The notes beneath the pieces were generated by a model, which saw nothing but the letters and a program-made list of their open reading frames with translations, was not told where the DNA came from and did not search any database. Positions 1 to 60,162 of a stretch of DNA of 64,000 nucleotides are shown here, piece by piece. Source of the DNA: Schmidtea nova (lineage: Eukaryota); contig CM097882.1 in the NCBI GenBank assembly GCA_044892505.1, positions 320,230,001-320,294,000 on the forward strand. The letters run 5' to 3'. Numbering within the stretch: the stretch's first letter is position 1; every line of letters starts with the position of its first letter. The translations under genes and the position numbers were made by a program.

Positions 1-273
1 ATTTGCTTCTTGATACAAGTCATCAATAATAATCACATCACCTTTGCTCAATCTAGATGACCAATTTTTATTGAAACCTTTTATGATTGTCATTTTTATT
101 TTACAAAATTGATCTTGAGTCAATCCATGTTCATAGTCAGCTCTCCTATGCCAATAAATTTTATTGAATTTAAATTTGAATAATTTCGATTGTAATAATT
201 TACAAACAAATAAAGTTTTTCCACTCCCACTCGGACCAACAATTTGAAACACTGCATAATTTCTTAATTCCAT
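1..273 (-). CDS. A32/FtsK-like DNA packaging ATPase of Polinton type, N-terminal 91 codons, open to the window edge
   Basis: Translated by hand from ATG at 273: MELRNYAVFQIVGPSGSGKTLFVCKLLQ...SKGDVIIIDDLYQEAN. Walker A is GPSGSGKT and Walker B is VIIIDD. No stop, so it is absent from the ORF track. Confidence 0.88.
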   Translation of the reverse strand, partial: MELRNYAVFQIVGPSGSGKTLFVCKLLQSKLFKFKFNKIYWHRRADYEHGLTQDQFCKIKMTIIKGFNKNWSSRLSKGDVIIIDDLYQEAN

Positions 274-366
274 ATTTAAAAATTATATTAAATTAGTATT
301 ATTGTTTATATTTGTTATAAATACTCGTTGTCAAAGTACTTGTTTCATTTAAAAATATTTTCAGTA

Positions 367-834
367 ATGATTAGAAACATTAATTACAAGGGTAAGACAG
401 ATGTGTCACACATGAAATTTCCAAATGAGAAACCACAGCAAATTGTAGATAGAAGTGGAAAGTATCAAATAATATACTTAGTGACAGGAAGATATAGAAT
501 AATAGGATGCAAGAAATTTATTAGTGATGAACAAGTAAAGTTTTACGATTTAACAATACAATCGATAACTGTAACTGCAGATTTAGGATTTATTTGTAAT
601 TTAAATGAATTATCTAAATTGATAGAATGTATTTACGAGCCAGAATTATTTCCAGCTTTGAGATATATCAAATATAATCCAATGTGTGTAAATATATTTG
701 GAAGTGAGAAATTAGTCATATTAGGATTAAAAAACAAAGACTATTCAAATATAGTTGATAATATTATTAACAATATAAAATCAATTATCAAAGATAAAGC
801 CTTTGTTGATTTCATACTAACATGTGACTCATGA
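367..834 (+). CDS. TATA-binding-protein (TBP)-like protein, 155 aa from ATG 367, intronless, element-encoded
   Basis: IQSITVTADLGFICNLNELSKLIECIYEPELFPALRYIKYNPMCVNIFGSEKLVILGLK matches the second TBP core repeat (IQNxVxSCDVKFPIRLEGL...YEPELFPGLIYRM..P.IVLLIFVSGKVVLTGAK). A shortened, degenerate first repeat ends IIYLVTGRYRIIGCK. Confidence 0.85.
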   Translation: MIRNINYKGKTDVSHMKFPNEKPQQIVDRSGKYQIIYLVTGRYRIIGCKKFISDEQVKFYDLTIQSITVTADLGFICNLNELSKLIECIYEPELFPALRYIKYNPMCVNIFGSEKLVILGLKNKDYSNIVDNIINNIKSIIKDKAFVDFILTCDS

Positions 835-1098
835 CTGCAATATTGATGCAATAGAAATGCTTAATTCGGATTGGTCGAGTGTGTATTTCGAGAATAAAGA
901 CATGTTGTGCATGCTTGAATTTTATTTGTTCAATGTGTATTATCTTGTACATGATGTGTGTTTATATCATATATAAACTCTGAACATTCTGTCATAATTT
1001 ATATCTACAATATGTCTCAACAAACAAATATTTTAAAAAGTGGTAATATTAAAATTACTATTTTTCAATTTTAATATATTTTATTTTGAGATAAACTC

Positions 1099-1615
1099 AT
1101 GTCCGTGGTTTACACCAAATTGACTGAAATGTTCCCCAATCTGATGCAAACGCTGACCTTTACAGCACCATAGCTGTTCCCGTACAAAATTCAAGTTTTG
1201 ACGGGAATAGATGTCAATCAGGTATTGCTGGATCATCAGGCCAATATCAACAACGAACTGCCCTATTTGGCGGAATATATATTGTGCGCCTACCAATGCG
1301 GGCACTGTGTTGATAGAATCCACAGGTTTCAAGTGTGGGTTCTCAGAAATACTCTCAATCAATTTGAGACATAGCAGATGAAGAAAATTGTCGAGGAGGA
1401 TGAGGAGATGGAAAAAAGAAACATGTCCCAATTCAACTCCGGAGCCGATAGATGAACAATCAACTATCGAATGTGATTGTTCTGTGAATGAAAAACAGTG
1501 CGACGAATCACCCGAATCTCCAGATTGTGACGAATGTCACAGAGTTGTTGAAAACAATGAACAAGAAGAAGAAGAAGAAGAAGAAGAAGAAAACGACGAA
1601 GAACAACAACAATGA
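1099..1615 (+). pseudogene. Disrupted Polinton accessory ORF with a CxxxCxxC motif and an acidic tail; function unknown
   Basis: GC-richer island. The + frame from ATG 1099 reads MSVVYTKLTEMFPNLMQTLTFTAP*LFPYKIQVLTG...YILCAYQCGHCVDRIHRFQVWVLRN... with two stops, followed by the Glu-rich ORF 1388-1615 in another frame. Confidence 0.4.
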
Positions 1616-2018
1616 ACAATATTTATGTTTAAGTTTTTTATTGTAATCAGTTTTAGTTTTTTATCGTTTTTTAGTTTAATGTTAATTTTGTATTTAGTAT
1701 TCGGTCATTTTTATTATTTAGTTTTTGTCATTTTAGGTTAATCATTTTATTTTAATAAATGTTTTGGATTTTAGTTTTAGTTTTTTTTATTAAACATGTA
1801 TTTTATTTTAATTTGAAGTAATTTTTATTTACTTTTTAGGTATATATTTTATTAAACATTTAAGTATTTTTTTAAAACTTTTTAGTAGCTTTTTTATTAT
1901 TAACTAAGTTATATATAAAAAGGAAATAATTAAAGAATGAATAGAGATTATATGAAAAAATTAAAATGAATATTAAAAAATTATAATTAAATAAATAAAA
2001 CATATAAAACATGCATGC

Positions 2019-2558
2019 ATGCATACAACAAAGATAACAAAGACATGCATATCGTGTGCAATACAAATGGATGATTATGATTGGATAAATACATACATTC
2101 AAAACTATAAATACAAAAACAATTTTAAGATATTGTCACAATCTATAAAAATGAAATCACGAAAACAAAATTTTGATATCAGCGAAGAAAAAATATTCCC
2201 GACTAAGGTAAAACCAGTCCAGATGTATTATGATAGCCGAATTTATTTTTTGGTTCAAGAAATTCCGTTTCGCTTATCTTATCCGATAAAATTAACAAAG
2301 TCGTTGTACGCTAGTCTTGCTGTAATTATTGATAAAGAAGATATTATGGCTCTAAATAAATTATTTTCAAAGATCAATGTGAATTTAACTTGTAAAGAAA
2401 CGATGTATATCAATAACAAAAATACTCGTTTCCATAATGCTTTTCAAACTATCGAATTCAAGGATCAAGAACACTGGTTCATTATGATAATTATTCAAGG
2501 ATACAAGATTGATATAAAGGAAGTGATTACTCCAATTTGGAGAGTTGATAATGCATGA
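2019..2558 (+). CDS. Conserved Polinton accessory protein, 179 aa, function unknown
   Basis: Intact ORF. A diverged homologue lies in copy B at 59923-60162 (EDIMALNKLFSKIN...IQGYKIDIKEVITPIWRVDNA vs EDVAALNKILSKIN...FQGYKIDTKDVITPIWRINNA). TATAAAA lies just upstream. Confidence 0.7.
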   Translation: MHTTKITKTCISCAIQMDDYDWINTYIQNYKYKNNFKILSQSIKMKSRKQNFDISEEKIFPTKVKPVQMYYDSRIYFLVQEIPFRLSYPIKLTKSLYASLAVIIDKEDIMALNKLFSKINVNLTCKETMYINNKNTRFHNAFQTIEFKDQEHWFIMIIIQGYKIDIKEVITPIWRVDNA

Positions 2559-2627
2559 TATGCATAATTGTGATTTAATAAATTTTAGTATAAACAATTT
2601 TTATATTATTTTTTGTTTTTATATTAA

Positions 2628-2891
2628 ATGAAATTGAATATAGTGATATTATTATTATGTGTGAACAATACAGATGGAGAACATGCTTTGTCAGCTTGCC
2701 AATCAACCCATCCGTTTAGAAGAGAAGATAGTACTTGTTCGAGTTATAATGAAATATGTGTTCACTTAAACATTGAATGCAGCCAAATATGATTACAATG
2801 TGATCAATGTCCTTCAAAAAATGTTTTGATTAATAATGAAATGTGTTGGGCAAAAACTGCAAATAATTTTAATAAAGCAGTAACCCCCTAA
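2628..2891 (+). pseudogene. N-terminal half of a putative membrane glycoprotein (signal peptide plus Cys-rich ectodomain), copy A
   Basis: MKLNIVIFIIM, a frameshift, then ALSACQSTHPFRREDSTCSSYNEIC...QCDQC. Near-identical peptide in copy B at 60303-60545. Confidence 0.6.
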
Positions 2892-5800
2892 GTAGAGAGC
2901 GCGCAAGATTCAATTTTAACCCAAACATCCATTAAAAACCGAAGCGATTAAGTGAGAAACGCCAAAAAGGTGAAGTGGACTCAAAGACATCAACTAGTAG
3001 AAAACGCGCTAGTTGGGAATCTGCAAGTCCTTACACTGAAACCTCAAGAAAAATTAAAAGTCGTCAAAGGAAGAACGTTTAAAAGTTAGAATGGACGGAA
3101 AACCCATCGAAAATGCCCATAAAGAATAGAATTTTGTCATAACACTTCAGTGCAGAGAAAAATTAACAAAATTTTAGAAGAAAATTGTGATTTTATCCAA
3201 AAATTTCACATCAAAAATAAAAAGATCTAATCCTGATCGAAATATAGTAAATTGAATCAAATTGAATAAATTTTGATTCAAAAATAAAAATTTTGGATTA
3301 AAATAAATCATTTATAGTTTAAAAAAAATTATTACGTAAAAATATTGATTTAATTTTGCGGAAAATTATTAGAATTAATTTTGAGAAATTAAAAAGAACA
3401 TTCTAGAACAATTTGTTTTATTGCATTAGTGAAGGTAACACGCAATCGATGGTATATGTACCGCCATCAAAATGGCAAGAAGCAGAATTTGTGTGGAAAT
3501 TTTCTTGTTTTTAGAACTTGTGAGAATTTTGTGAAAAATTTTGATTAAAAATATAAATTTCCACTCAAACCAGAATTTTTAGAAAAACCATTTATTTTCT
3601 CGAGAGAAAGAAAAACTGTTAGGAAAGCCACATTTGAACGTAAGGGTATCATTATTTTATTTTATGTTTTTTTATTGTTTTATCTTATTTTATTAACATT
3701 ACATCGATATAGGAGGCTCAAAAAGTCATGCCCTTTGGACACCCTATGTCGGCATTGCTCTTATTGAATTTTTTTAGCTATTTTTATTTTATTATTAAGA
3801 TATTTGTTATTTGGATATTAATAATTTTAGTGTAAATATTATATTTTATAGTTTATATGATCTTATTATCCTAAATTTTAACTTTTAATTTTGTTTTTCA
3901 TTAACATTATCACAGATTCCCATAGTTATAAAGTTTCAGTATTTTAAATATCAGTTATCAAATAAATAATTTTATTTGCTTCCATACCCCTTGAAATCTG
4001 TTCTGGCCTTGTGCCGAGCGTGTGGAAGTAGCCTGAGCGGATCGCTGGTTCGATTCGTAATCGATCAGCCCATTTTCCGACTTCAGGTGATACGCCCAAA
4101 CATCCATGATCACTTCATCCCAACTGGGGAACAGTGGCTTGGCCAAGGGCAAGGTGTTATATTAATGATCTGTAATTTATAGTAGTGTATCTTTTATCTG
4201 AATTATATTTTTAACATAATGTGCACTTAAAACCTGATACTGTATAAAAACGTTAACGTCAATTCATCCATCAATGACTTTTCCATTTTATAATTTATCT
4301 GTACAAGAATATTCAACTCGTTATTCGCCTTCACTCTCACAACAATTGCAATCTTATCCGAAAACACATGTCGAATAAAAGCCAAAATTGAAAAAAGAAT
4401 CGTTCAAAATAATACTCAAAACCGATAAAATAATTACCAAGAAACGAAATATGAAGAAAAGTATTGATTTATTCGAACTAAATCTCATTAAATGCTTAAT
4501 TATCTAAATAATTTTACTCCAGTGAACCTTGTTTTCGGGAGCCTGAAGTTCCTGAGTGAAGTGTCTCGAAAAATTCGCGCGCACTCTGTTCAGAAAATTC
4601 ATGTTTGAACGAAACCGAAATTCACCTATTTGATGTCGAAAACTATTATGAATTAGAGTTGATTTTTAATGTTAACCGAACGAAGATAGATAAACTGAAA
4701 TAAAAATTTATTGTGAAAATTACTTTAGATCAACAGGTTTGAATCCTTGTGGGAATTTCCGAATCCAGAATTTTACTTTAAAAGCATTTGCCTGAAAGTG
4801 GATAAATTTTAAGTTATTTCTTTATTTTAATATATTTAGGAAAATTTATCAATTAAAATTTTATTTATTGTGTAAAATGCAACATTTAATTATAAAACCA
4901 AAATTTGCTTCTGAGAATTATATCACGAAAAAATTTAAAGCACCAAAATTTTTATTCTTCTTAAAAATATTAAAAAATTTATAAATCGAGTCCTCATATT
5001 AGTTGGAAGAATTAAAATTTTTCTTAATATATAAAGTATAAATCGAAAATTTTATTAAAATTTTAAAAATTTAGCTAAAAAGATTATAGCTAATAAAATT
5101 ATTGCTTTATTGCAAAATTTAATTATATATTTATGTAATTTATTAATTCATAAATTAACCCCCACGATATTATAAAAAATATAATACATCCATATTTGCA
5201 AAGCAATACATCCACACCATTCATTAACACCATCCATACTAATACCACATGAAACATTTACTTAAATACAACACACACACCCTACCACATTTCAATCAAT
5301 ATGATCTTCTATACTAAATAATACGATAAACAATACATCCACTCACCAACACACACAACGCGATTTCATCTAACAGTAGCTACTAGCATCATACATCCAG
5401 ACAATTCCCACAAATATTCATACAATCCCATCCATTGTTTATCGCCCATTGCAGTAGCATCACTTTCAACATACAAACACATACATTTACAACAATAGGA
5501 TATCTATTTCAATATATTACAGCATTATTTCAATATTATATACACACAAGCCTACAATCACTACATCTCGTCTCACCAAACCACAGCAAACTACAACATC
5601 CCATATAAAGTCTCATTATAGGGTACAGTACGTCGATTCATAAACACCACCCGATTAATGGTGGCCAACAATCTGCATTTATATCAATTTCACCCCCTGA
5701 GAGTTGGATCCCCCACATATCTCTGCCGATCAGCCCACTTCACTCGCTAAACATACCTTATAGCAATGAAATACATTCAAAAAATTTTTAAATTTCAATA

Positions 5801-7295
5801 AGGTAATAGAAACAAAAACATATATTTATATTTTCAAAACCAGGAAAAAGGATAATTAATAATTTTATTTAATCGAAACAGAATCAAAAGATTTGTAAAA
5901 GAAGTTACCAAGCGATGATGATTGTTTTCTGGAGAGTTCTATTGTGTTCTCAGTTTGATGAATTCGATGGCGAATTTGTTCAATGAGAGTCCATATGGAA
6001 GCTGTGCAAATAAAACTGAACGAATGTTGTACTGGGGCATAAGAAAATGGTATAACACAGCACAACAATTATATGAGATATTTTTTTAACCGTTATACGA
6101 AGTAAATAGCACAGAAAATTATAAGATTCCAAGCGTCTGATTTGGGAATTTCGTCGGACGATTCTGCCGTATTGTGGCCGCATCTTAAATAAAAATGGAG
6201 AGTTTCAAACCCCATATTCACTGAGATTCATGGGGAAATTGCCATTTCGGATGCCGGTGATGCTTTGTTTTCGTCCTAGAAAGAAAATAGAAATAGATAA
6301 GCAGGATAAAACCTTAAGCTTTCAAATTTACCGGTTTCTGGGGAAAATCCTTATTAAAAACCAAAAATCGATATTTATAATATTGTATGTAACAAACAAC
6401 CAATCAGGTTGAATCTTATTTATATCGAAATATAAAACAAAAATAAATTTTTGTATATAATGCTCTGTAAAATTTCTTTTTTCAAATTTTTCTATTCGCT
6501 AAGAACGGGTTTCAGTGAATAACCTTTAAATTAAAAAATAAAGGAAGTTTCCGTTTAAACATAAATGGTCTTCAAATAGGTAAATTAAAGACATTAAAGT
6601 TTGTTTAAATATCCTACATTGTAGCCGTTACAGTTGTCAAGGCCACGGCAAGAATTCAAAAGCTATGAGGTTAAATTTTAAATTAAAAATTAAATCCACA
6701 ATATAAAGCAAGATAGACATTAGGTATAGGGAATAAGTAAAATTTAGTTAAATTTACCGACACAAAATATACCAATTTAAAAATTTTGGAAAATAATAAA
6801 AACCTTGTTAAAATCTACAGAAATCAAATACCCCGAATATGTGTAATGATCAAAGATTATTCGATCCCCGAGTTGAGTTTGCGATTATATGCGTAATTAT
6901 GAGCTTGCAAATAAAAATAAATGCGCGAAAACTCCTGTGCGTTTGGATAATACTATGTATAATGATTAAGTGGGAAAAAATTAATAAATTTATATTGATG
7001 GAACTATTTATGTTTTTTTTTAAATTGAAATGAATATCCGTAGTTAAATCGTTGAACAAGGGACAAAAATGGGCATTAAATCTTCTATCGGTAGCCCTTG
7101 GACCCAGGAGATATTCGGCCAATCATAGTTTCGTATTGATGACGCTCACTGATTGCGAATACCCACCCATTTGTTGCATTACCAACGTTACATTGTTACG
7201 GGCAACAAGATGTTTATTCTAATGTTTTATGTGTTGAGTTGTTGATGAGAGCCATAGCAACGTCAAGGTCATATTGACTATCACAAACCCACCAA

Positions 7296-7659
7296 ATGGA
7301 AAAAATGATTAGCAAAATCTATGAAAGAGTGAAATGTCCGAATCAAACATTTATTAAAATACAATATGAACAAATCAGATGTCAAAATCAAACTGTTGAA
7401 ATTGAAAACGAAAAAACAGCATTAGGATTACATTATATAAGTTTATTGATATTAATAGTGATCTTGATATTATCAACGTCGATAAGATTAGAGAAAATAT
7501 CGAATATTCCTAAAAATAATAATCCTACGAATAATATTCCGATTGAATAATATTCCGATGAATAATATTCCTATGAATAATATTCCTATGAATAATTTAG
7601 ATATGAATAATTTTGAATCGAAATTTTGTACACGTACACTAGAATATATTTATAAATAA
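7296..7659 (+). pseudogene. C-terminal half of the putative membrane glycoprotein (NQT sequons, TM helix, NNIPM-repeat tail), copy A
   Basis: KIYERVKCPNQTFIKIQYEQIRCQNQT...LHYISLLILIVILILSTSI, then 15-bp repeats encoding NNIPM after a 1-nt frameshift, ending NNFESKFCTR. Homologous to 60599-60895. Confidence 0.65.
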
Positions 7660-8099
7660 ATTTTATTTAGTCTTTGTATTTATTATTTTTAATGTCTTTG
7701 TTAATATTGCACATGGATTGTTTAATTATTTTGGCAATGTGTTTGTTAACTATGTGGTTGTTTAAAACTAAGTATGAAGTTATATAGCATCGTGTTCATA
7801 GAGCGGTGGCGGTTCGAATGATTCCATTGGTACTTGGATTTTTTGAAATTTTTGAAATTTTTAATTTTTGGTCCAAATTTAATTATGAAAATGATATCAT
7901 CGTGTGCGTCACTGAAAAGCAGAGGGACTGATACTACTTTTAATCTTGGTACTTTAAGTAATTTTGTTTTTGTTTCAAAATCTTATTTTTTGATGAGACA
8001 CATTCAAAAATGTGACCATCGTGTGTGTCACTGAAAGGCCTTGCGAACGATACCAAATTTGACCTTGTTATTTGTACTTGTAAAATTTTTAAAAAATTA

Positions 8100-10689: not shown

Positions 10690-10950
10690 CAAAAATTCAA
10701 ATGCTATAGAGGACAGTTTCATTAAATAAAAAGCAGCAAACAAGTTCAAATGCAAAGATCACAGTTTCAATATATATAAAACACCAAGCAAACTCAAATG
10801 CGAAGATGAAAGATTTATTAAATAAAAAGTAGCAAGCAAACTCAAATACGAAGATGAAAGATTCATTAAATAAAACCCAGCAAGCAAACTCAAATGCAAA
10901 GATGACAGATTTATTAAATATGAAGAAGGAAGCAAATCAAAACTCAACGC
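10690..10950. repeat. Degenerate ~47-bp minisatellite, 5-6 copies, probably within a Gypsy LTR
   Basis: Unit is approximately GCAAACTCAAATGCGAAGATGAAAGATTTATTAAATAAAAAGTAGCAA. Confidence 0.7.
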
Positions 10951-16652: not shown

Positions 16653-19600
16653 TTTTTTCTGGGTTCCTGAAGGTGGCAAGGAATCTGTCAAAATATATAG
16701 TACGGATGTTATATGAGTGGAGTTTTCATTAATTATTATGATAATTTCATGTTTCATTAACTTGTACGATATCCGATTAAAATATTTCAGAAAAGCGGAA
16801 TTCCAGAACTCCATTGTTTTTAAAAACCGTTCCGGCAATTGTGGTATTAGTGAAACCAAATGGTAAACTGTATCCACTAACAAGAATCACTGGATTCTCT
16901 ATCGACGAGGTAGAAATTCTTTGTGACATTGTCACAATTAATTTGTAAGGCACTTCTTATTTTATCTAATATTTTAGATTTTGTCTAATTGTACCCAAGT
17001 TATGAAATTAACTTCTGCCGCTCGAAAATTATACTCCAATCATGGAGAGTTAATAGAATCATTCGATGAACTCAAAACGAATGATGAAATTTATGTATCT
17101 CTTGGTGAACCTTTTATTGATCCGATGAAACTTATTAAAGGTATTTTGAACAATTTTATGTTAATCTCTGTGTCATTTGAGCTAAATTTTATCACCAACT
17201 GCCACAAACTTTATTCTATTTTATAAAAACAAAAAAATTAAAGACAATCAACAACTTTGGTGCGTTATGTTATCACATGAAATGCAACTTTAACTCAACT
17301 TCTTTTCTGGTTTCCACATCATGACAATATATTTTATCTTATATAAAATGAAATACAGTGCGTAAAACTGAGATAAACATACCTATACAAAATAATAATT
17401 TCAAGTGTTTAATTATTTTTTGTTTTACCTAATCAATTTCGTAAAAGTTTTTGTTTGTGGTTATTTAACGCATTGCAGACACGGGGAAAAAGTGTGATAT
17501 TATTTCAGTCAATAAAAAATGATCAAAAATAAGTTCTTCTATAGAAGTCTTTAAGCCAAATATCGGAGATGTTTTCCTTGTCTATTGGAGCTATTATTAA
17601 TGTAATGAAGGTAATATCGTGTTATACTTTATAATATTCATTGTTTTGATGCATTAAATAAGAATGATTACTATTTCTATTGTAAGAATATAACGAGAAG
17701 GGAACTGTCAGGGGTAATAAAGGAAAATGTAAAGGCCATTCAACGCTGAATGAGCGAGACCTTCGTCGTTTGAAGTTGTCCGTTCAACGTTATTCTTTTT
17801 CTACCATTGAACAACTTAGAATATATGTGATTGTGAATGATAGTGTTCCAGTGACTCAAATGACCATAGGAAATTACTTAAGGAAGATGGACATCACATT
17901 TAGGGCGTCTAGGTGTAAACTGTTGCTGACATATTTTCAAAGATCCAGGCGAGTATTATGGGCAAAGAGTCTACTCAACAAACCTACGCAGTTCTGGACT
18001 ACCTGATTATTCTCCAATGAGTGTGTGGAAGAACTTCCGTTGGGGGGGAATCAGTGAAAAAACTGTGTGTCAGCTCCGAATTATCCCTCGTAATACGCGT
18101 TAGAATTCCGAGTGGTATATCAGTGTATTAGAAAATAAAGTGAAAGACAGTTTACTGATTCACTTTCGCTCACTTAATAAGTGTTGTTTTCAAGATGAGA
18201 GGGCGCCTTGTCCCCGTTCTAATGTAGTTGTGAAAAGGCGTAAATAGTTTGGTATTATATTATTGGAATGGCCTGGGCAGTCCCTAGACTGTAATCCAAT
18301 TGAGGATATGTTGAATTACTTAAAGATCAGAGTCAGATCGATGGATCCAAAAATTATTCCAGAGTTTAAAAAACAATATTACATGTCTAGCATAACCAGA
18401 TCTTTGAATACTGCCAGGCTCTTTGCACATAAATGCCCAGATGACTTAGGAATGTCATTAGAAACAATGGATCTACAGTTATATACTAACATAACACTTT
18501 GTTCAAGCTATAATAAGTTTAAGCTCTTTCGCATGGGTGTGCTTAATTCAGTTTTACGCACTGTAATATCTACTCATTAACAATGCAAAAAACCCAAAAG
18601 AAGTTCACAGTAATGGATTCCACTTCTGACAACATTTTTAGCGACACTGAAATAAATAACTGTAAATAATAAAATTTTATTTAACCAAAAATGTCGGAGC
18701 GTTGAGTCTTTATTTGTTTCCTTCTTCTTAATAATTAAATCTGTCGTCTTCGCATTTGAATATGAGTGGTGCTTCTTTTTTAACGAAACTCTCATCTTTT
18801 AAATTTGCATAACCTTGCTTGCCATTTTTAGTGATATTAAAACAACGATAAAACCAAATCTAGATAANNNNNNNNNNNNNNNNNNNNNNNNNNNNNNNNN
18901 NNNNNNNNNNNNNNNNNNNNNNNNNNNNNNNNNNNNNNNNNNNNNNNNNNNNNNNNNNNNNNNNNNNNNNNNNNNNNNNNNNNNNNNNNNNNNNNNNNNN
19001 NNNNNNNNNNNNNNNNNNNNNNNNNNNNNNNNNNNNNNNNNNNNNNNNNNNNNNNNNNNNNNNNNNNNNNNNNNNNNNNNNNNNNNNNNNNNNNNNNNNN
19101 NNNNNNNNNNNNNNNNNNNNATTTAATAAGAGAATGAATTTTTAAATTGCGTTTAATATTTTACTGTGCAAAAGATTTTTTATTATGAATTATATTTTTT
19201 ACTGTGCTTTTGATTTCCAGCGATATATTTTTTAATACATTACATCAGTAAAAATGATTTTTAAAATCAAGATACTGAAATTTTGGTAGATGGGATGTTT
19301 AAGATTTTTATAAAATTGTAAATCTATGTTACATATTTTTATATTATTTTTTACTGTATTTTTTATTTATTTTTAGCTTTTCTCAAATAAATCTTTTGAT
19401 AAAAGCATTTTTTGTAGAATTAGAATAATCAATATAAATAATGTTAATATTTACTGTCTATTAAAAAAGACAATGCTAAAATTTTGTGTTTTGTTACAAA
19501 TATTTTGGTCTGATATTAAAGAATGATAATAAAATAAATCTTAAATAAAAGGCCAAAGGCTAAGAAAATAATTTTTTTTAAAGATAACCTGATTGTCCCG

Positions 19601-22600
19601 AATAATCTAAATAAGTAATTATAATATCGATAATAAATATACACGCATACGCTCTACCCTGTTTTGGTGTGGTGGATAGAAACCGTATAAAAAACGCACA
19701 AAACAAAATTTCTGAAACTTCAAAAGTAACTATAAAAATATTTTTCGCCACACATTTAATTTTTTTTAAAAAAGGGTCAACTAACAATTGCAATTTAAAT
19801 AAGGGCAAGTATAAAAATTTTCATATCTACCACGAATCTCGTTTTGTATAGGTCTAATGTCACGAATTCGGGTTTTTCTAGTAAAATGGGGTACATTGGA
19901 CTCGATTTTCCAAACATTTTGTCACTTAGTCAAAATTGTTTAAAAATGTATAAATATCGTTAAAAATGTTTTTGGTTAATGTCCAGGGGTTAGTTGCCGG
20001 GTGCTGGAGAACCTTGGAGCACTTTATTTGGCAAATTTGTAAAATCTGGTATTTTGCAAAATCAACACTGATACATGCATATATAATGTGATGGTGATAT
20101 ACATTTGTACATTCAAGAAACCTTATGACAAAATAATCTTTAAATTGCTTATTACTTTTTATTCATGTTTTCAGATCCAGATTAAACGATGGTGTGGGTC
20201 AGGTTTTAATTACTTAGCTCTGAACCGAACTACGACATTTTGCTGTGTGCCTGCACTCTACAACCGTACGGATATTGCATTGCTTCCAAATTCCATTATT
20301 ATCTCTATCGTTATCTTTTCAAAGAGTAGTGATTTTTTTTCTGTCGGGACTAGTAGGGATATTATGTATTTTGATAGACATTTTTATTTCATAAACCTCA
20401 TTTAAGAAATCGCACAAGAACAGATTTGAGTGTATTTATATATAAATAATTAATATTTCATTTCGTTTATTACATTATTGTTTAAGATTGTTATAATAAA
20501 TCAAACTATCTTATATGTAATTGATCCTAAAATATTTTTTTCAGAATCTATATTAATTAAAGAAGGCAGTTTTTGGGGCCTAAATGGTCTCTATATTCCA
20601 AAATCAAAGCGTAAGGTCGCCTCTGCTGGTGTAAAGCGTACAGGGTTAGTGTTTTTATTAGAGTTAGTTAATTATCTTAATAACTTCTGTTACATTTAAA
20701 GACATTTAAAAATAGTGNNNNNNNNNNNNNNNNNNNNNNNNNNNNNNNNNNNNNNNNNNNNNNNNNNNNNNNNNNNNNNNNNNNNNNNNNNNNNNNNNNN
20801 NNNNNNNNNNNNNNNNNNNNNNNNNNNNNNNNNNNNNNNNNNNNNNNNNNNNNNNNNNNNNNNNNNNNNNNNNNNNNNNNNNNNNNNNNNNNNNNNNNNN
20901 NNNNNNNNNNNNNNNNNNNNNNNNNNNNNNNNNNNNNNNNNNNNNNNNNNNNNNNNNNNNNNNNNNNNNNNNNNNNNNNNNNNNNNNNNNNNNNNNNNNN
21001 NNNNNNNNNNNNNNNNNNNNNNNTAGATTATACTTGATAACAAAAGTCTGGTTTGTATTTGCTATTTATTTGGTATTTATTCATAATTTGTGAAAATTTT
21101 CGAAATGTCACTTATTTGTAGCATTTATTCACTTGCTGTTTTCGTAAATAAATATTCAAAAATATTCAACTTCACTAGCTTCTGCTTTTTTAGTTAATAA
21201 TTATAATTTGTTTAAATTTGATTTTATCGTGTTTTTCTTTATAGTATCAAATATATTTCTATCAGCTCCAAATGAAAGTATCATTAACATATCATATTTT
21301 ACCATTGATCTTTTCGTTTCTATTTCAGAAATTTTCATTATTTTTTAAAAAAACTTAAGATCAGTATTGTATTTTATAATGTTACACGAATTTTCGGCAC
21401 AGCCTTTGCCAAGTGTGTATTTGGAAATAGTTTTTGTCGCTTGTTTAAATATTTTATATTATTTTGAATTGACTTGATATTTGAAATTCGTTCATAATAT
21501 CTATTTAAAAATTAATATAAAAAATAAAAAACTAATATCTTAATGAAAAAATGCATTTTAAACCTTAAGGTAAATATACAAGTAAAGTCTAAGGCAGCGC
21601 TTCTCAACCTTGCTGTTATTGCGACCAGTGGCGGACTGGCTACTTATTCTCAGGGTTGCTGATGTACCTCAGGGGCCCGTAATTGCATGCAGGGTCACGA
21701 ATTCTTTCTAAACAAATTTTACCTCTATGTTAAATTTACGTGAAAATGACTTTTGTGCACCCTATGGTAGTTACACACCAACATTGTAATATCATTTGAT
21801 TACCCATTAAAAAGAAAATGATTAGATAGGCTACTTATTAAATATTACAGCTCATTTAACACCAGAAAACAACACGTACAGTATGTGGAGCAAGTAACAG
21901 GCAGAAATAAACAGGAGAAAATGTTAGTACAGTAAAGCACGTTTTAATTCGTTAGAACTTTTTGCAAGGTGGTCTATGATGACATCATGATCTATGGGGA
22001 AATTCTTCTCTTCTAAAGCAATCAACATTAGTGCTTCTAGGTGAGCCAATCGTTGAGCGCAATCGACTTTTTATTATTTTCAATTTGCTAAATGAGCGTT
22101 CACAACTGACCTGTGTACAGCTGAGTGTCATGACCATCTTATACACAATGTACAAATTTGTGTAGGAGGAAACAAATAAATTATGAAAATGGAGAGCTTT
22201 GAAAGCACATACAAGACAGTTCTGACAAGGAATGTTACTTTTCAAGCATATATCTTGAGTGTGCTCGATATCTTCATCAAAATTCAATGGACTGCTAGCC
22301 TCATTAACAGAAATTTCAGTTTGAAGGAAATTGCTGGACTGTATATCCCGGTAGCTGAGAGCAAACGAGACCAATTCATCACGCAAATCACACACATCTA
22401 CATTCGCCATGCCTGCCAATTTTAAAAGAAGTGACGGATTTTCTTTGAGATAGGATTGGATGCTGTCAAACTTGTTCGGATCCAAAAGGCTTATGTCCAT
22501 ATACAGATCCTTGTTGGCAGAAAATCTTGACTGGACTTGTGTAATTGCATTGTCAATTACACATTTAAAAGTGTCAATTTCAAATTTCCGGTTTGCAGAA

Positions 22601-23655
22601 AATGTGTATTCATTTTCGTCATCTGCTTCATAATTGAATTTCTTTGGTACACGATGTGGTCGTGTACCAAAAAATGTTCGTAAATCAGCCTGATTATTAT
22701 AATTCTATACTTGCATTGTTGATTTAAATAATTTTTTTTCATAAAGTACAAATCAATAGGTATTAACTAAAATATATATTTTTATTCTACATTGGGCCCG
22801 GATCCCTAACATTTGGAAAGGGCCCGGGTTGCTAACGCAACCCGGCAACCCGGGTCAGTCCGCCACTGATTGCGACCCAGTTTATCAACGTAAATATTCT
22901 CACGCCCCCCATTTTTTGATTTATCGAAAATTATAGTGTCATAATGAAAACGGTCCGATATTCGTACATTTAATTTTATTGTTAAAATGCGACTGTTTGC
23001 TATAAATGCACAGTAATGTATACGTTTATCCCTACCCTTTATACCAACGCCTACTAAAATACAGGCTTAACACAAGTAGTGGGAGGTTGGGGTATTGTCC
23101 CGTCTGCTAATTCCGAATGCATATGAGTTTCGGGAGGTTGTCATTGTAGGTGTGTGCAGTATGTGGGCAACAAAATACAGATCACAGCTAAATATAGAAA
23201 AAGAACTTAGGGTATCCATATCTGGTATTACTCCTTCATTTCAAAAACTTTGCAATTAGAAACAGGCTCAAGGAAGTCATTAATTAATAACAATAACATA
23301 TTTAACTGGTATTTGTTTCATACTAATAAACTTAAATAATAAATATGATAAATTATTTATTGGTAATATGTAATNNNNNNNNNNNNNNNNNNNNNNNNNN
23401 NNNNNNNNNNNNNNNNNNNNNNNNNNNNNNNNNNNNNNNNNNNNNNNNNNNNNNNNNNNNNNNNNNNNNNNNNNNNNNNNNNNNNNNNNNNNNNNNNNNN
23501 NNNNNNNNNNNNNNNNNNNNNNNNNNNNNNTTATTTGATCTTCAACAAAGTTTTAATTTTGTTTTTAAATATACTCGCGCCCCCCTTCTAGTAACGCCGC
23601 GCCCCCAAGGGGGCGCACCCCACAGGTTGAGAATCGCTGGTCTAAGGTAAAGGTA

Positions 23656-23745
<90 letters not shown>

Positions 23746-26700
23746 AATAAGAGAACACCATTTTTTAAAATATATTAATGCAATATATTTCGACAGCTTA
23801 GCTGTCATCATCAGGCTTTTCACAATCTCAATAAAATAAAAATTGATCTTAATTATACGCTTAATAGTGATTACATAATTACATGTGCATAATCCAATAA
23901 AACTTTTATTTACCCTAATAAAATTAATTAAACACTCTCAAAATGCATGTAGATATTGCATTTTGTATATTTATTTTAGGATTAAATGATTTTATCATCA
24001 AAGCCTCACAATTCACACGTTCATAATAATTTTTAAATCCCCTAGAAAGTATTTTGAAATTAGAAATATCAATGCTCTTCTTGCAAGTCTTGTTATGCTC
24101 AATAATGTTACTCTTTCCGCTCTTTCTGGCATGTTCTTGAACTCGTGTACAGAGATGACGGGCAGTCTCTCCAATGTATGTGGCATTACACCCATTACAA
24201 GTAAAACGATATACGAGATCAGAACACAGACCAAATGGCGTCACAGATTTATTACTGAACATGTCACGAACTTTGCAAGACTTAGAAATTATTTTAACAT
24301 TAGTATTTCCAATATACTTTATAATAGATTTTTTAAAATTTACAAATCCCTCAGAAAACGGTAAAACTATAACAGAACCAATGCAATCATTCAAGTTACT
24401 TTTATTTATTTCATTATTATTATTATTGCAATCAACACCATCATTCATTCCCATAACAACATCACCTGTTTCAATCAAAGGAGCACTATCAGATGTATTA
24501 AACGGATCAACACCAGGAGAAATCTTTTCATCAATCACATTCAACTTATTAATACACTTATCAACAGTTTCACTCACCATTCGTTGCAAGAAACATTTTG
24601 AATATCCATTATTCTGTAGTTTTACTACAGAATAATGGATATTCAAAATGTTTCTTGCAACGAATGGTGAGTGAAACTGTTGATAAGTGTATTAATAAGT
24701 TGAATGTGATTGATGAAAAGATTTCTCCTGGTGTTGATCCGTTTAATACATCTGATAGTGCTCCTTTGATTGAAACAGGTGATGTTGTTATGGGAATGAA
24801 TGATGGTGTTGATTGCAATAATAATAATAATAATGAAATAAATAAAAGTAACTTGAATGATTGCATTGGTTCTGTTATAGTTTTACCGTTTTCTGAGGGA
24901 TTTGTAAATTTTAAAAAATCTATTATAAAGTATATTGGAAATACTAATGTTAAAATAATTTCTAAGTCTTGCAAAGTTCGTGACATGTTCAGTAATAAAT
25001 CTGTGACGCCATTTGGTCTGTGTTCTGATCTCGTATATCGTTTTACTTGTAATGGGTGTAATGCCACATACATTGGAGAGACTGCCCGTCATCTCTGTAC
25101 ACGAGTTCAAGAACATGCCAGAAAGAGCGGAAAGAGTAACATTATTGAGCATAACAAGACTTGCAAGAAGAGCATTGATATTTCTAATTTCAAAATACTT
25201 TCTAGGGGATTTAAAAATTATTATGAACGTGTGAATTGTGAGGCTTTGATGATAAAATCATTTAATCCTAAAATAAATATACAAAATGCAATATCTACAT
25301 GCATTTTGAGAGTGTTTAATTAATTTTATTAGGGTAAATAAAAGTTTTATTGGATTATGCACATGTAATTATGTAATCACTATTAAGCGTATAATTAAGA
25401 TCAATTTTTATTTTATTGAGATTGTGAAAAGCCTGATGATGACAGCTAAGCTGTCGAAATATATTGCATTAATATATTTTAAAAAATGGTGTTCTCTTAT
25501 TTATATGAATAAATTNNNNNNNNNNNNNNNNNNNNNNNNNNNNNNNNNNNNNNNNNNNNNNNNNNNNNNNNNNNNNNNNNNNNNNNNNNNNNNNNNNNNN
25601 NNNNNNNNNNNNNNNNNNNNNNNNNNNNNNNNNNNNNNNNNNNNNNNNNNNNNNNNNNNNNNNNNNNNNNNNNNNNNNNNNNNNNNNNNNNNNNNNNNNN
25701 NNNNNNNNNNNNNNNNNNNNNNNNNNNNNNNNNNNNNNNNNNNNNNNNNNNNNNNNNNNNNNNNNNNNNNNNNNNNNNNNNNNNNNNNNNNNNNNNNNNN
25801 NNNNNNNNNNTTATTTACTAAAAAATATTTATGTCGTAAATTTGTCATCTTTTACTTTTATTATTATTTTTACTTTTATTTTTAATTATAGTTGATAAAA
25901 GTCATAACTGTAATAAATGTTTTCAATGACTTATCTTAACTTTATTTGAACTTTTTTCATAGAACCGGAAGAACTTGGAGAATATTAACATTTTCAAATG
26001 GAGATTACTTGATAAATGAAGCTGTGGAAGTTATTTCAAATTTAAAGGATGTTGAAGAAGTAATTTAATTTCAATTATATAATTAATTCATATTAATTAG
26101 GTAAAATCTATTTGTGGTAAAAGGCTTAATCTAAATGGCCAATACAAGAAATTGTATAATTCAGATGGAGTTGAAATAACAGACTTGAAATTATGTGAGA
26201 ATATTCGAAATTAATTGCTAAATATTTAGATTTTATTGCAAATTTTAGGTTGATATTATTAATTACAAAGCTTAGTGTTTACAAAATCCATTTTTAATAA
26301 AAATTAATTTTTTATAAATATTAATAAAATAAAGTTAAAATTAAAACAGTTTTACTCTTAATTACTGATTGATTATACATTTGAGCAATTTTTTCCATTT
26401 AAACCACAAAAAACTAATTTTTTCTTTAGTGATAAACGATTTTATAAGGAATTTCGATTGTTAGGACAAAATGGCACGGACAAAAATATAAGAAAAAATA
26501 ACCAGTGAAGAAATTAAATAATCTATTTATTATAATTAACATTTTGTCCGGTCACCGAATTTTGCCAATAGATACATACTGGTTGCATTAAAAAAATCAA
26601 AAAAATCTACGCATGCAATCTACAGCTAAGTAATCATAAACACTAGTGAGTTTATTACACCGTATAACGATGAATAATATAAAATTTTATAATATAAAAT

Positions 26701-29700: not shown

Positions 29701-32700
29701 CATTTGAAATAAGTAAAGGGCGAATGCGGTAAGTTCTAGATTTAATAGAAATTTTCAAAAACATATGATGCTGGAGTACACAATTACCCCACCTGGCCTT
29801 AGGAAGGTTAAAATTTTTCTCAATCATTTTATACCGAAAATATTTTCCCTAATTATATGATTATTTCTTTTCAATGTTACACTTTTTTAATTTGCAATAT
29901 TATTTAAATTAATATTAATTTAGTACAAGATGAAGAATCTTATGTTTGGAATTCGAATTCTAATATTGAAATTCTTGGTCCTATTTGGGCGACGAAAAAA
30001 GAAAATCTCAACCAATCCGGAGTGTACTATTACTTTCAGAAAACTATTAAAGAAATCAAGCACTTTATCAAAAGTTCTAAATCCACTTTAAATGAAGTTA
30101 ATTAATTATTTTTTATAAATTAAATTTTCTTAATTTGTTTGGCAATTGAATTGTTTTATTATTTTTTTAAATCAGATTTCATATTTCCTGATCATTATTA
30201 CCTAAAGGTCTCTAATAAAAATATTTATATTGAATTATTTTTGTCATACGCACTTGATAAAGGTTGTGCCGAAATATCGTGTACTTAAAAACCAAAAAAC
30301 TTTGATCGATTGTCATACAATTATGAAAATTATTGATATTTATTATTAAACCTTTAAATATAGCAATCTGTAATAAAATTATTGTGTTAAACAATTTTCA
30401 AATTTAATTTCCTATAAGCAAATAATTTGTACTCGTTTGATATTTTTTGTGGTTTGAAAAAAAGAGGCGAACATAAAATCGTGTGCGAGTTCTAAGTTTG
30501 ATGGGAAAATACATTTTTTAACAATTTGTCAGGTGAGTGATGCGTAAATACGTTAACTTTCCTTTCCAACTACACAAGATTATCATTTTCAATGATTTGG
30601 CTGTCTTTTAACATGAGAATAATTTACGAAACTTTTTGAACTTGAAACCTACCCTAACTTATATACTATTCGAATTTCTAGTCTATCTTTTCTTATCCAA
30701 TTTCCTTATTATAATAGGTAAAAATATATTAAATTTAACAGTGCAATTTTACTAATGTCTCCGTTGTCTTCCAACAAACTTTGTTTTTCAAATCTTAATG
30801 ATAATGATGTCTTAGTGAGCCTTTTGGCGGCCTTATCGAAGTCTATATAAATCTTATATGAAATAACTTCAACTAATAGGTATATGAGATACACATCTGC
30901 AAATGATGCAGTTATTCCATTCAGCAATCTAATTCAATATATTTCTCAGCAACAGCAACACAATCAATCACAAAACACATTTTATCAGATCTCTGTAAAA
31001 TACCAATATCACCTCAAATCGATAATGGATTACATTTGAGCAATTATTCACTCTAATCCCAAATCTATAAAATCTGTTTAGCAATTAAATAAACAATAAA
31101 TAAAGTATGTAGAAGTGAGTTCACGATAACTCATCGTTTTTTGTCAAAATCTTTTCTAATTTTGAAAAAAATCACGTTTTTAGGTTAAGTTCAATAGAAC
31201 AAAGACATTTGTTATCATTTTAGACTTAAAATGCTGTCAGCTCACGATAATTCATTATTTTCAATTTTTTTCTAATTCCGAGACCTCCCTGGCGAAAATA
31301 AATAGATTAAAAATGTTGTGAACTCGCGATGACTCATCACTTTCAAAATTCTTTTTCGGTGACCCCCTCAATACAGCTCGAACTAAAAGTCGAATGACAA
31401 ATAACTTTAGTGTTTTGGAAATGGTGACCGGAAATGGCTGCTTTGTTTAGATATTGTTTCGGCGCCATAGAAATTTTTATAATTTTTAAAAGATATTTTG
31501 ATATTTTATTATTATTTTAAAAATATTATTGTGAAATATTTGTGTGTATGTGTGTGTTTGTCATGCACATGTGTTGTATTCGGATTGCACGCGTATTGAA
31601 CTTTTATTGAATTTTGTTATTATTATTATTATTATTAGAGATTGTCGATGAATATTTTTTTTGATCGAAAATCTTTTCACTTAATAAAATTGTTTTTGCA
31701 GCTAAGNNNNNNNNNNNNNNNNNNNNNNNNNNNNNNNNNNNNNNNNNNNNNNNNNNNNNNNNNNNNNNNNNNNNNNNNNNNNNNNNNNNNNNNNNNNNNN
31801 NNNNNNNNNNNNNNNNNNNNNNNNNNNNNNNNNNNNNNNNNNNNNNNNNNNNNNNNNNNNNNNNNNNNNNNNNNNNNNNNNNNNNNNNNNTAAATTAATT
31901 ATATATTATAAAAATCAGTATGAGTGTTACAGTATGTATATGTTGTGTATGAATGTTGAAATTGCTCAAAGTATTATTTCTATTAATATATATATTCTCT
32001 GAGATAATTAAAAAAGAAAAATATTTGTTTTAATAATGAAAAGTTAGGCTTAAAAGTTGAAGATGAAGTTATAAAAACAATGAAAGACAAAATATGGATA
32101 CCAAATGACAACGTAAAAAATTCTATAGAATATACGCATCGTACACTTTGTCATGCTAGAGTAAGGAAGGTAAATGATTAGATGTCACAGAAGTTTGATA
32201 TGGAAAACAAAATGGAAAATATTAAGAATGTTGTTCAAAGTTGTGAACAGTGTCAAAAAAGAAAATCTGTTACCACACGCACGAAAGAAACGATAATGAA
32301 ACATAGAATACCAGAATTATTTGAAGTTGTATTTGTAGACATTTGTGGACCATTCAAAACGACAGTTAATGGAAAGAAATACATTCTTGCAATAATTGAT
32401 CAATTTAGTCGATATATTTCTTTGAATGCTATTGCAAGACAAGATGAAAATACCACTGCAAAGGTAATTAAAGATAATTGGATTTTAAGATTTGGAGCAC
32501 CAAAATTGATATATTTTGATAAAGGAAAAGCGTTTGAATCTAACGTAATAAAAACACTTACAGGAACACATAAAATGTAGATAACATATAGTAGCCCATA
32601 TCATCATTCGGCAAACGGCGTGATTGAAAGACAATTTAGAACTATTAGAGATGCTATTCAAATATCAATAAAAGATAAAATTCATACAGTAATTGGGCCG

Positions 32701-54181: not shown

Positions 54182-54875
54182 CCCTTTCAGGACGGGTGTA
54201 CTATATATAGTAACTCAAATATCTTGAGAACGGATTAACATTTTTTTTATTTAGGAATCGTTTGAAAGATAATTAAAAGATGCACATTCTGATATATAGC
54301 ATGACCTTCTTGGAAAAAATTAAAAAATTTTGATATTTTTTCCTATTTTTAAATCACATCCTGTTCAAAAAATCAATAAATTGAGAAGTTTTTAAATGAG
54401 TTTCTCTGATGATTTACGCAAGACTATAAAATGGTATAAGAAGTTGGCACTTCATTTGATTGATATTGCTATTTTTAATGCATACACAATATACAAAATG
54501 AGAAATCCAGTAAATTTATCATTTATTAAATATAAACTTGATATTATTGAACAAATTTTCACCAAATACGGTTCAATGCGCAAAACAAGTGTTAGTAGAC
54601 CAAGAATATCTAATCCTCTTCGTTTATCTTCAAGACACTTTTCTTCTTACATTGAAAAGAACAATAAAAACACTACCGGCCAAAGAAAATGCATAGTTTG
54701 AACAACAGGATCAAAGAAACTTACAAATAAGTGATCAAGATTTGAATGTAATGATTGTGATGTTGGGTTGTGTGTCGTTGATTGTTTTGAAATTTATCAT
54801 ACAAAAATAAACTTTTGAATAAAAAACACTTATTTTTTTAAAAACTTTCTTTTAAAAAATCCAGTCCTTAAAAGG
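54182..54875 (+). mobile_element. piggyBac (PGBD4-like) internally deleted element
   Basis: TTAA|CCCTTTCAGGACGGG ... CCAGTCCTTAAAAGG|TTAA. Protein reads RKTIKWYKKLALHLIDIAIFNAY...RLSSRHF...KCIV...FECNDCDVGLCVVDCFEIYH. Confidence 0.9.
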
Positions 54876-56852: not shown

Positions 56853-57104
56853 CGAAAGGTAATTGAAGAGTTTGTAGAATGGTCATAGCTTAGAAGGTGT
56901 ATGGTGGGTGCTCGACCCTCAATGAATCAAAAAACTTTAAATCTTTTTAATCCTTACAAGTTATATATCATTCGAAAGGTTTTTGAGAGTTAAGTATGAT
57001 GGTCATACCCTGAAGATTTATGGTCGGTAAAAAATACGGGTCACCTTGTTCATTCAACACATCTTCTCTCAGGACATATGCTGGATCACATATAAATATA
57101 TTGG

Positions 57105-58035
57105 TGTCACGTCCTCTATAATTGTCATATGCCAGCCTTTTATTTTTAATTTTTTAGTGTCTCTTATCATCTTTACAGCTTAAGGCCCTCTTATTATTTT
57201 TTATACTGAAAAAGGGGTGATTACTTGATGTTATTCTAAACTGGGGGACTGTGTAGATTTTATTATTTAAATAGCAATCCAGATACGACTGACGTGTTAA
57301 GTCTAGTATCTTTCATGCTAATCCTCTTAGCTTTCATACTTGTCTCATCTATCATTAAACTAAAACATTTGTGCCTTAAAAACACATACTCTTTATAAAT
57401 TAGTCCTTTATTCTCGTCTTTAAATTTTCCAATGACAGAATCGAGGTTCCTACTGTATAAATGATAATTAGGTGTCAAGAAGATTGTCCTTAATCATCGC
57501 CAGTAAAAAAATGTCAAGTGAGAGATTTTTAATTTCCAAAAAGAAGGAATCAGTATCACCAGCAACGATATTAATTTCGCAGTTGAAGTCATCACGTTAT
57601 TTTTGAAACTCTTCATACTAGAGCTGGTACATTCTAAGTTTGGATAGATCCAGTACAGTTGGACCAATGTAACTAGGTCTATCCAAATACATTGATTCCT
57701 TACTTAACAAAACAGAAATCAGGTCATCGTCTATTTTTGTTGTTTTACGGAAAGTCAGTTTAGAACATTATGTTATTAATTTTCGTGGTGAATTGCACAA
57801 ACACACATTTATGCGCTTTTTCAGATTTTTATCAGTCTTGCAGTAAAGACGGTTGTTGAGTAATTTGTAATAATTTTTATCTAATTTATTTGAGGACGTT
57901 GCCTTAAACGTCGTATTTGTGTTTATGTAATTTTGAAATATTTTATTTTGTATAAATTTTATTGCTCGATGTGTTTTCGTTATTTTAACACTTAATTCAA
58001 TAATTAGTTGCACCTCCAAGCGCGAAAACTTTACT
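57105..58035 (-). pseudogene. polB: Family B DNA polymerase (Polinton type), C-terminal fragment, copy B
   Basis: ITKTHRAIKF.Q...YYKLLNNRLYCKT..NLKKR; LDRPSYIG.TVLDLSKLRMY; AGDTDS; GKFKDE; DDKR. Several stops and frameshifts. Confidence 0.88.
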
Positions 58036-58059
58036 CGAGATTTCAATAACATGATTGAT

Positions 58060-58617: not shown

Positions 58618-58758
58618 ATTTCTAATTTTATTAATTTATTATCATTGTTTATATTTGTTTTAACGGCTTAAGGCACAGTTCCGTGACATATACGGGCAAA
58701 AAGCCCTTAATAATAAAATAAATGTGCATTAAGGGGTCATATTTAAAAGTTTTCATTA

Positions 58759-59922: not shown

Positions 59923-60162
59923 CTAACTAAAGAAGATGTTGCTGCACTAAATAAAATTTTATCGAAAATCAATAAAGGTTTAAGTTGCAAAGAAACTGTT
60001 TGGATCAACAACTGACAAACTTGTTTCAAAAATGCTTTCTAATCTATCGAATACACGGATCAAGAACATTGCGTCGTTACTATAATCTTTCAGGGATATA
60101 AAATCGATACTAAAGATGTTATAACTCCAATTTGGAGAATTAACAATGCACGGTATGCATAA
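59923..60162 (+). pseudogene. C-terminal half of the ORF 2019-2558 homologue, copy B
   Basis: TKEDVAALNKILSKINKGLSCKETVWINN*...DQEH...FQGYKIDTKDVITPIWRINNA, two stops. Confidence 0.8.

Follow-up and report, generated by a model that had tools for sequence, protein, structure and literature searches.

A reduced TATA-binding protein-like gene in Polinton/Maverick elements of the adintovirus type and a promoter-like motif upstream of their morphogenesis genes

The TBP-like gene and its two copies

The window analyzed is a stretch of 64,000 nucleotides of the AT-rich genome of Schmidtea nova (GenBank assembly GCA_044892505.1, contig CM097882.1, positions 320,230,001 to 320,294,000), and the features discussed are collected in Table 1. 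An intact gene for a TATA-binding protein (TBP)-like protein lies head-to-head with a gene for a genome-packaging ATPase in one remnant of a Polinton/Maverick element (copy A), and a second, broken copy lies in a further remnant (copy B) with the same gene order, ATPase (-), TBP (+) and c1 (+), where c1 is a family of neighboring genes with no Pfam or PDB match. The family alignment begins at the Met encoded at 367, indicating that this ATG is the start rather than the upstream TTG at 328, and the protein aligns with its relatives without internal gaps, so the gene has no intron. Copy B joins a PolB fragment directly to a broken ATPase gene. An rve integrase is not seen in the parts of copies A and B that lie inside the window. 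Copy A is cut by the window edge, and inverted repeats near copy B lie outside the block shared with copy A and are partly of low complexity. The long open reading frames of the window are transposon genes, and searches of the window for Rfam families and tRNAs returned no hits. Open reading frames antisense to the TBP and ATPase genes (clusters c8 and c24) were treated as by-products of AT-rich sequence.

Table 1. Features of the analyzed window (bounds of broken genes are outer bounds)
Position	Strand	Feature	Basis
1-273	-	Copy A, N-terminal 91 aa of the A32/FtsK-type packaging ATPase with a Walker A motif; the gene runs off the window start	Pfam Pox_A32 and RNA_helicase P-loop hits; 74% identical over 91 aa to the 207-aa ATPase of element contig L001; tblastn match at 1-273
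274-366		Copy A, divergent intergenic region between the ATPase and TBP genes; morphogenesis-gene motif at 302-310 (minus strand, 37 nt before the ATPase ATG) and an ordinary TATA box, TATAAATA, at 316-323 (plus strand, 51 nt before the TBP ATG)	Sequence read directly; motif positions
367-834	+	Copy A, intact TBP-like gene of 155 aa plus a stop; repeat 1 truncated (residues 1-56), repeat 2 complete (residues 57-142); F38L, M46I and G114E at family-conserved sites	Sequence, profile, structure-model and family-alignment comparisons
893-898	+	AATAAA polyadenylation-type signal 59 nt after the TBP stop codon	Sequence read directly
2019-2558	+	Copy A, 179-aa ORF of the c1 family, the usual neighbor of the TBP gene in the AT-rich subgroup; the motif TATAAACAA follows at 2589-2597	BLASTP against L001 9193-9651, E 6e-6; tblastn match at 2211-2555, E 3e-20; no Pfam or PDB hit
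7314-7707		Copy A, last block colinear with copy B, beyond which similarity is lost; copy A holds about 4.5 kb (2829-7313) and further sequence within 941-2332 that copy B lacks	Comparison of the two copies
32260-32661		Integrase-like match accompanying the PolB fragment at 33901-34705	Similarity match
33901-34705	+	PolB fragment of a third, separate Polinton remnant	Similarity match
57097-58013	-	Copy B, PolB fragment	tblastn with the PolB proteins of element contigs L014 and L026, E 3e-57
58057-58620	-	Copy B, packaging ATPase pseudogene with at least 3 frameshifting indels in the part comparable with copy A; the motif TATAAACAA lies upstream at 58645-58653	Comparison with copy A; tblastn
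58759-59224	+	Copy B, TBP-like pseudogene with 2 frameshifting indels and 2 premature stops	82.2% nucleotide identity to copy A; ORF fragments
59839-60168	+	Copy B, remnant of the c1-family gene	Similarity match
60605-60959		Copy B, last block colinear with copy A	Comparison of the two copies

The assignment to the TBP family rests on both sequence and predicted structure. The protein scores 42 bits against Pfam TBP (PF00352) with a cut-off of 22.9 (E 8.7e-11, residues 62-137), and a search of PDB sequences matches 35 distinct TBP chains, the best being the archaeal TBP of Methanococcus jannaschii (PDB code 2z8u, E 2.5e-16). A profile of the family against the PDB TBPs gives an E value of 1.8e-21. 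The first-pass annotation had set failure to model as a TBP fold as a condition that would refute it, and the AlphaFold2 model built on 21 family sequences is confident (pLDDT 87.8, pTM 0.79), with the 44 best Foldseek matches in the PDB all being TBP (E about 1e-8, TM 0.6-0.7) and no other significant fold matches. An exact look-up of the window protein in the assembly collection found nothing on record.

The predicted structure is asymmetric. Residues 60-142 form the full S1-H1-S2-S3-S4-S5-H2 repeat, whereas residues 1-56 form four strands only, with no helices and no stirrup, so that the two complete tandem repeats making the symmetric saddle of TBP are not present. A profile-profile comparison of the two halves still detects repeat homology over the last strands (hhalign local, probability 87%, E 4e-6), indicating that the N-terminal half is a cut-down repeat rather than an unrelated extension. 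Cellular TBP has four DNA-intercalating Phe residues, two per repeat (PMC10005294). Repeat 2 keeps both of its Phe residues (Phe-95 and Phe-111) together with the acidic stirrup E91-P92-E93-L94-F95, which is 91-96% conserved in the family; these residues align with the stirrup and Phe residues of solved TBPs and are invariant or nearly so. Repeat 1 has a single family-invariant Phe, at position 38, and this is Leu in the window copy. The central Asn and Thr that cellular TBP uses in the minor groove are replaced in repeat 2 by Ser and Leu, and an Asn appears on strand S4'. These DNA-facing positions, Ser-66, Asn-109 and Leu-119, are conserved within the family, whereas the aligned TBPs have Asn, Leu and Thr.

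The observation made in the first-pass annotation, of an intact intronless TBP-fold gene head-to-head with a Polinton packaging ATPase, asymmetric in its repeats and with a pseudogenized counterpart in copy B, is confirmed in every particular. The description of the window gene as intact does however require qualification, as the protein deviates at 3 of the 25 columns that are at least 90% conserved, ranking it 54th of 57 family members. Both window copies are endogenous relics; copy A is open but may be decaying and may no longer be fully functional, and the functional argument therefore rests on the family.

A lineage of Polinton/Maverick elements carrying the gene

The protein has 20 close homologues of 109-162 aa in public metagenomes, and a pattern scan gave 70 further metagenome loci. 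About 85 related loci were recovered in all. An exhaustive profile search found 3025 proteins at an E value of 0.001 or better, and of the 168 proteins retrieved, 118 share the architecture of an N-terminal half plus one full repeat, 19 are ordinary two-repeat TBPs and 24 are mostly truncated fragments. A scan of IMG/VR with the family profile gave one locus (L009), a GC-rich 44-kb contig whose 182-aa protein matches repeat 2 only, and it is not a member of this family. Pairwise dN/dS has a median of 0.29 over 81 pairs with none above 1. In a neighbor-joining tree of the repeat domain, comparing family members with both repeats of 19 two-repeat TBPs, distances are saturated (1.3-1.9) and monophyly of the family has a bootstrap support of 55/100, so the tree does not resolve the family from two-repeat TBPs or its origin.

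All open reading frames of the loci were clustered and annotated, and the gene lies among those of a Polinton/Maverick element. These include the packaging ATPase (27 loci; Pox_A32, 1e-7), an rve integrase (15 loci; Pfam rve, E 1e-12), a protein-primed PolB (6 loci; Pfam DNA_pol_B_2, E 3e-23 in contig L047, and present also in L014, L026, L063, L081, L083 and L085), adenain (Peptidase_C5, 1e-5), a parvovirus-type PLA2 domain (Phospholip_A2_4, 9e-13) and a pX-like protein for which the Adeno_PX match is weak (5e-3). A 410-420-aa neighbor is a double jelly-roll capsid protein, the model being confident (pLDDT 86.8) and matching the PBCV-1, iridovirus, Sputnik and mavirus capsid proteins in Foldseek at E about 1e-16. 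In places there are also Bcl-2 (in L001 and L007), KilA-N, C2H2, MATH/TRAF, RING and LRR proteins. The PLA2, pX-like and Bcl-2 genes correspond to the accessory genes described for adintoviruses, which were found restricted to animals (Starrett et al. 2021, PMC8502044). No RNA polymerase gene occurs in any locus, including the compact 13-kb contigs L085-L087. Terminal inverted repeats were not found in L085, L086 or L081.

Of 17 loci of at least 5 kb selected through the TBP-like gene, 14 carry a hallmark gene and the other three share accessory genes with those loci. The gene is adjacent to, or one to two genes from, the ATPase in 22 of 27 loci. To remove selection on the gene itself, long contigs were fetched through the ATPase alone; of six distinct contigs, five carry the gene (L080, L081, L083, L085/86 and L087's relatives) and the sixth (L084) ends before its expected place. 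The gene is thus a core gene of the lineage, spanning ATPase identity from 60 to 95%, and belongs to the elements rather than being a one-off capture, as the first-pass annotation had proposed.

A motif upstream of the morphogenesis genes

A k-mer survey of the 100 nt upstream of recurrent genes shows one dominant word, ATAAACA, preceded by T in 57% of cases and by C in 17%. The placement is sharp, with 47 of about 100 sense occurrences starting in the single 10-nt bin from -40 to -31 relative to the ATG. The motif is strand-specific and specific to a class of genes, being found upstream of the ATPase (19/21), the pX-like c4 (13/17), c6 (13/15), the capsid protein (9/9), c13 (7/7) and the integrase (8/13), compared with 1/63 for TBP, 3/24 for c1 and none for Bcl-2, KilA-N, C2H2 and adenain. 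Between -50 and -25 it occurs in 45/95 morphogenesis genes against 13/171 other genes (Fisher 2.5e-13; shuffled upstream regions average 0.9). For the ATPase it starts at -32 to -38 in 15 of 21 cases. The pattern recurs in independently fetched contigs and in the distant, GC-richer subgroup, whose TBP is only about 35% identical to the window protein.

The extended 8-mer form (T or C, then ATAAAC, then A or G) is found in none of 62 TBP upstream regions, and the 7-mer core is found in one, out of position. The TBP genes instead carry ordinary TATAWAW boxes at -60 to -15 in 25/62 cases. A close relative lacking the TBP-like gene was sought as a negative control for the link between gene and motif, but every long contig selected through the ATPase carried the gene or ended too early, and the link therefore has no such control. 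A literature search for the motif as a late promoter found nothing.

Proposed role of the TBP-like protein

The favored reading, held at a probability of about 0.5, is that the gene encodes a minimal, element-specific promoter-recognition factor of the TATA-binding type. In this view the factor would be made from an ordinary TATA-box promoter read by the host machinery and would then bind the ATAAACA motif of the morphogenesis genes, nucleating a host Pol II pre-initiation complex there through its conserved C-terminal stirrup. Cellular TBP kinks DNA with two Phe residues per repeat, between base pairs 1/2 and 7/8. Four of its eight TFIIB-contacting residues lie in the C-terminal stirrup (PMC10005294), and the stirrup and the repeat 2 Phe residues are the best conserved part of the protein described here. 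The half that cellular TBP offers to TFIIA is absent, and the remodeled first half, lacking the helices and stirrup presented to TFIIA and to regulators acting on the convex face, would lie over the 3' half of the motif, where the motif departs from the TATA consensus. The analysis establishes the fold (from sequence matches and a confident model), the conservation, the linkage to element genes, purifying selection, and the motif with its gene-class specificity, whereas binding of DNA, the identity of the motif bound, the contact with TFIIB, expression and timing are inferred. The first-pass interpretation, a virus-like element with its own basal transcription factor that could redirect host Pol II to element promoters or sequester TFIIB, is partly supported; the fold, asymmetry, element membership and absence of an RNA polymerase hold, while redirection and sequestration are neither shown nor refuted, with the positioned motif giving circumstantial support for redirection only.

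Features of both the protein and the motif weaken this reading. The motif overlaps a fair TATA box (TATAAA plus CA) that host TBP might read unaided, and it could instead be an initiator or a leader element. Another conserved protein could be the reader, such as the Cys/His-rich c3 family, which has no Pfam or PDB match, or the KilA-N and C2H2 proteins in one subgroup. With the central minor-groove residues replaced and at most one Phe kept in repeat 1, the protein may not bend DNA as TBP does. An unlikely alternative is a decoy or shut-off factor that competes with host TBP for TFIIB or for TATA boxes without supporting a full complex, damping host transcription or keeping the element quiet (latency). 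This would be consistent with a conserved TFIIB-facing stirrup beside a missing TFIIA-facing half, needs no special motif, and finds some support in the anti-host accessory genes (Bcl-2, MATH/TRAF and RING) that neighbor the gene in some elements. However, it does not explain the family-wide conservation of DNA-facing positions that differ from cellular TBP, nor the class-specific motif, and a gene retained in the sampled relatives better fits an essential role in the element's own program.

Less likely still is a non-transcriptional role, with the saddle binding or bending the element's DNA for packaging, protein-primed replication or integration. The proximity to the ATPase, the altered DNA-contact residues and the frequent placement of the gene near an end of the element, it being the last gene in L085 and L086, are compatible with this, although gene order varies, the stirrup residues that serve TFIIB contact in cellular TBP are the best conserved, and no repeated terminal motif was found. 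Chance capture of a host TBP paralogue as neutral passenger DNA is suggested only by the decayed state of both window copies and by the unresolved domain tree, and it is contradicted at the family level by the truncated architecture in 118 protein clusters, conserved synteny with element genes across about 85 loci, the dN/dS value and the presence of the gene in contigs chosen without regard to it.

A more far-reaching possibility, which remains tentative, is that a whole lineage of animal Polinton/adintovirus elements runs a two-tier transcription program with a single self-encoded half-TBP. Regulatory genes, the TBP gene among them, would use host-type TATA promoters, and every morphogenesis gene would be switched on through a private ATAAACA box read by the half-TBP, which would plug into host TFIIB and Pol II while being blind to the host's TBP regulators. 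If so, it would be the smallest known virus-encoded pre-initiation-complex nucleator and the first transcription mechanism proposed for Polintons. Polintons, Mavericks and adintoviruses are widespread in animal genomes and are viewed as relatives of the ancestors of several groups of eukaryotic DNA viruses, and for the control of their genes, which is not understood, the truncated TBP and the motif confined to virion and packaging genes offer a concrete and testable hypothesis. The protein also provides a natural minimal TBP showing which parts of the saddle can be lost, and the gene and motif are practical markers for annotating this lineage in genomes and metagenomes.

The first-pass annotation knew of no described case, but the case is not wholly undescribed. 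The only prior mention found is a TBP gene label, which may or may not denote this family, in figure legends on midsize eukaryotic linear dsDNA (MELD) viruses with adintovirus-like PolB (Starrett et al. 2021, PMC8502044 Fig. 5; bioRxiv 10.1101/697771 Figs 5-6). The label stands in a section on non-animal datasets and is given without sequence analysis, a statement that the gene is a core gene or promoter analysis. As far as the literature searched shows, the core-gene status, the truncated architecture, the purifying selection and the motif are new.

Compared with cellular and archaeal TBPs (e.g. PDB codes 2z8u, 1mp9, 1vok, 1ytb and 1cdw), the protein is a true but incomplete family member that superposes as a whole model, has no N-terminal tail and is encoded by a mobile virus-like element. 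TRF2/TLF-type paralogues have two repeats with loss of the intercalating Phe residues (PMC10005294), whereas here those of repeat 2 are kept and repeat 1 is truncated, and no search returned a hit named TRF2 or TLF. The use of a TBP mimic on host Pol II by a virus without its own RNA polymerase is established for beta- and gamma-herpesviruses, where KSHV ORF24, EBV BcRF1 and HCMV UL87 read a non-canonical box in late (structural-gene) promoters (PMC4893493; bioRxiv 10.1101/2025.08.25.672222). The resemblance is one of functional logic only, as the herpesvirus proteins are large multidomain proteins acting with five other viral factors, there is no sequence relation or Pfam hit, and the Foldseek matches are weak (E 6e-4 to 1.4e-2, TM 0.37-0.47). 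The protein is thus not a member of the herpesvirus family, although it may work like one. The best viral fold matches are the TBP-like proteins of giant viruses (Nucleocytoviricota; E 3e-7 to 1e-4), which carry their own multisubunit RNA polymerase and whose proteins have two repeats, are longer and are 8-21% identical.

Conserved upstream word and the c3 family

The conserved word ATAAACA, usually in the form TATAAACA or CATAAACA, lies about 35 nt before the start codons of the ATPase, capsid, and other morphogenesis genes of the TBP-bearing elements (contigs L001-L087 and the window). It is absent, or in the case of the TBP genes almost absent, before the TBP, Bcl-2, KilA-N, and C2H2 genes, and it is a candidate late-type promoter. 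In the GC-richer subgroup (L059, L063, L064, and L070) the gene of the pX-like family c4 has two copies of the motif, placed at about -42 and at -11 from the ATG. An alternative candidate reader of the motif is the protein family termed c3, of about 160 amino acids, which is conserved across both subgroups in 13 aligned loci (L001, L085, L063, and 10 others; alignment A3) and is located next to the capsid, adenain, or TBP genes. The c3 sequences have invariant Cys/His positions and an acidic N-terminal motif. The family has no Pfam or PDB match, and it may represent a zinc-binding or nuclease-like protein.

Coordinates of the motif sites, related loci, and further features of the window
Sequence	Position	Strand	Feature
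L085	5183-5191		ATAAACA motif, example
L081	6820-6828		ATAAACA motif, example
Window	302-310	-	ATAAACA motif
Window	2589-2597	+	ATAAACA motif
Window	58645-58653	-	ATAAACA motif
L001	265-735	-	c3 family gene
L085	11590-12075	+	c3 family gene
L063	6579-7040	+	c3 family gene
L001	8091-8576		Bcl-2 family homologue
L007	2678-3163		Bcl-2 family homologue
L080	1-1642 and 9267-9437		LTR retrotransposon pol gene and reduced TBP gene
Window	2829-7313 and within 941-2332		Copy A sequence lacking in copy B (about 4.5 kb and about 0.8 kb)
Window	1388-1615		ORF with a poly-Glu run, in the shorter of these stretches
Window	32260-32661 and 33901-34705	+	Third Polinton remnant (integrase-like match and PolB fragment)
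Window	23735-25512		Perfect palindrome
Window	23375-23530 and 25516-25810		N runs bracketing the palindrome
Window	21985-22500 (-), 39255-39908 (-), 54396-54701 (+), 62952-63943 (-)		hAT dimerization-domain ORF, MULE transposase ORF, piggyBac-like ORF, LTR-retrotransposon gag (zinc knuckle) with an aspartic protease
Window	10708-10947		Tandem array of a 48-nt unit
Window	18637-18829		Partly complementary copy of the array

Related elements outside the window

Three nearly identical contigs of about 13 kb from three JGI samples (L085, L086, and L087) show the gene order PolB-ATPase-c4-integrase(+chromo)-c6-c6-c13-capsid-adenain-c3-64aa-TBP, where c6 and c13 are further ORF families of the elements. 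The arrangement may correspond to a near-complete compact genome with the TBP gene placed as its last gene, although no terminal inverted repeat was found. In the closest intact relatives of the window copies (L001, L003, L004, L006, and L007) a Bcl-2 family homologue is positioned between the ATPase and TBP genes. This gene is lacking in the window copies, and its presence in the relatives points to an animal host. In L080, a 28-kb contig, the element lies adjacent to an LTR retrotransposon pol gene and its TBP gene is reduced to a 56-aa call, making this another endogenous, decaying copy in a eukaryotic genome.

Element remnants, transposons, and repeats within the window

The two additional stretches of copy A, identified from a comparison in which the pieces were kept apart and not joined, are either nested insertions in copy A or deletions in copy B. 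The PolB fragment of the third Polinton remnant matches element PolB with an E value of 1e-66, and the integrase-like match is found 1.3 kb upstream with an identity of 29%, a level at which it could belong to another transposon. The window is dense in transposons, with no clear host gene, tRNA, or Rfam RNA seen. The palindrome has 100% complementary arms of 693 nt and, nested inside them, of 208 nt, with each arm carrying an ORF that has a weak GIY-YIG domain match, and it may represent a hairpin-forming transposon or an assembly artifact. The tandem array is composed of four overlapping 96-nt copies at 75-79% identity.
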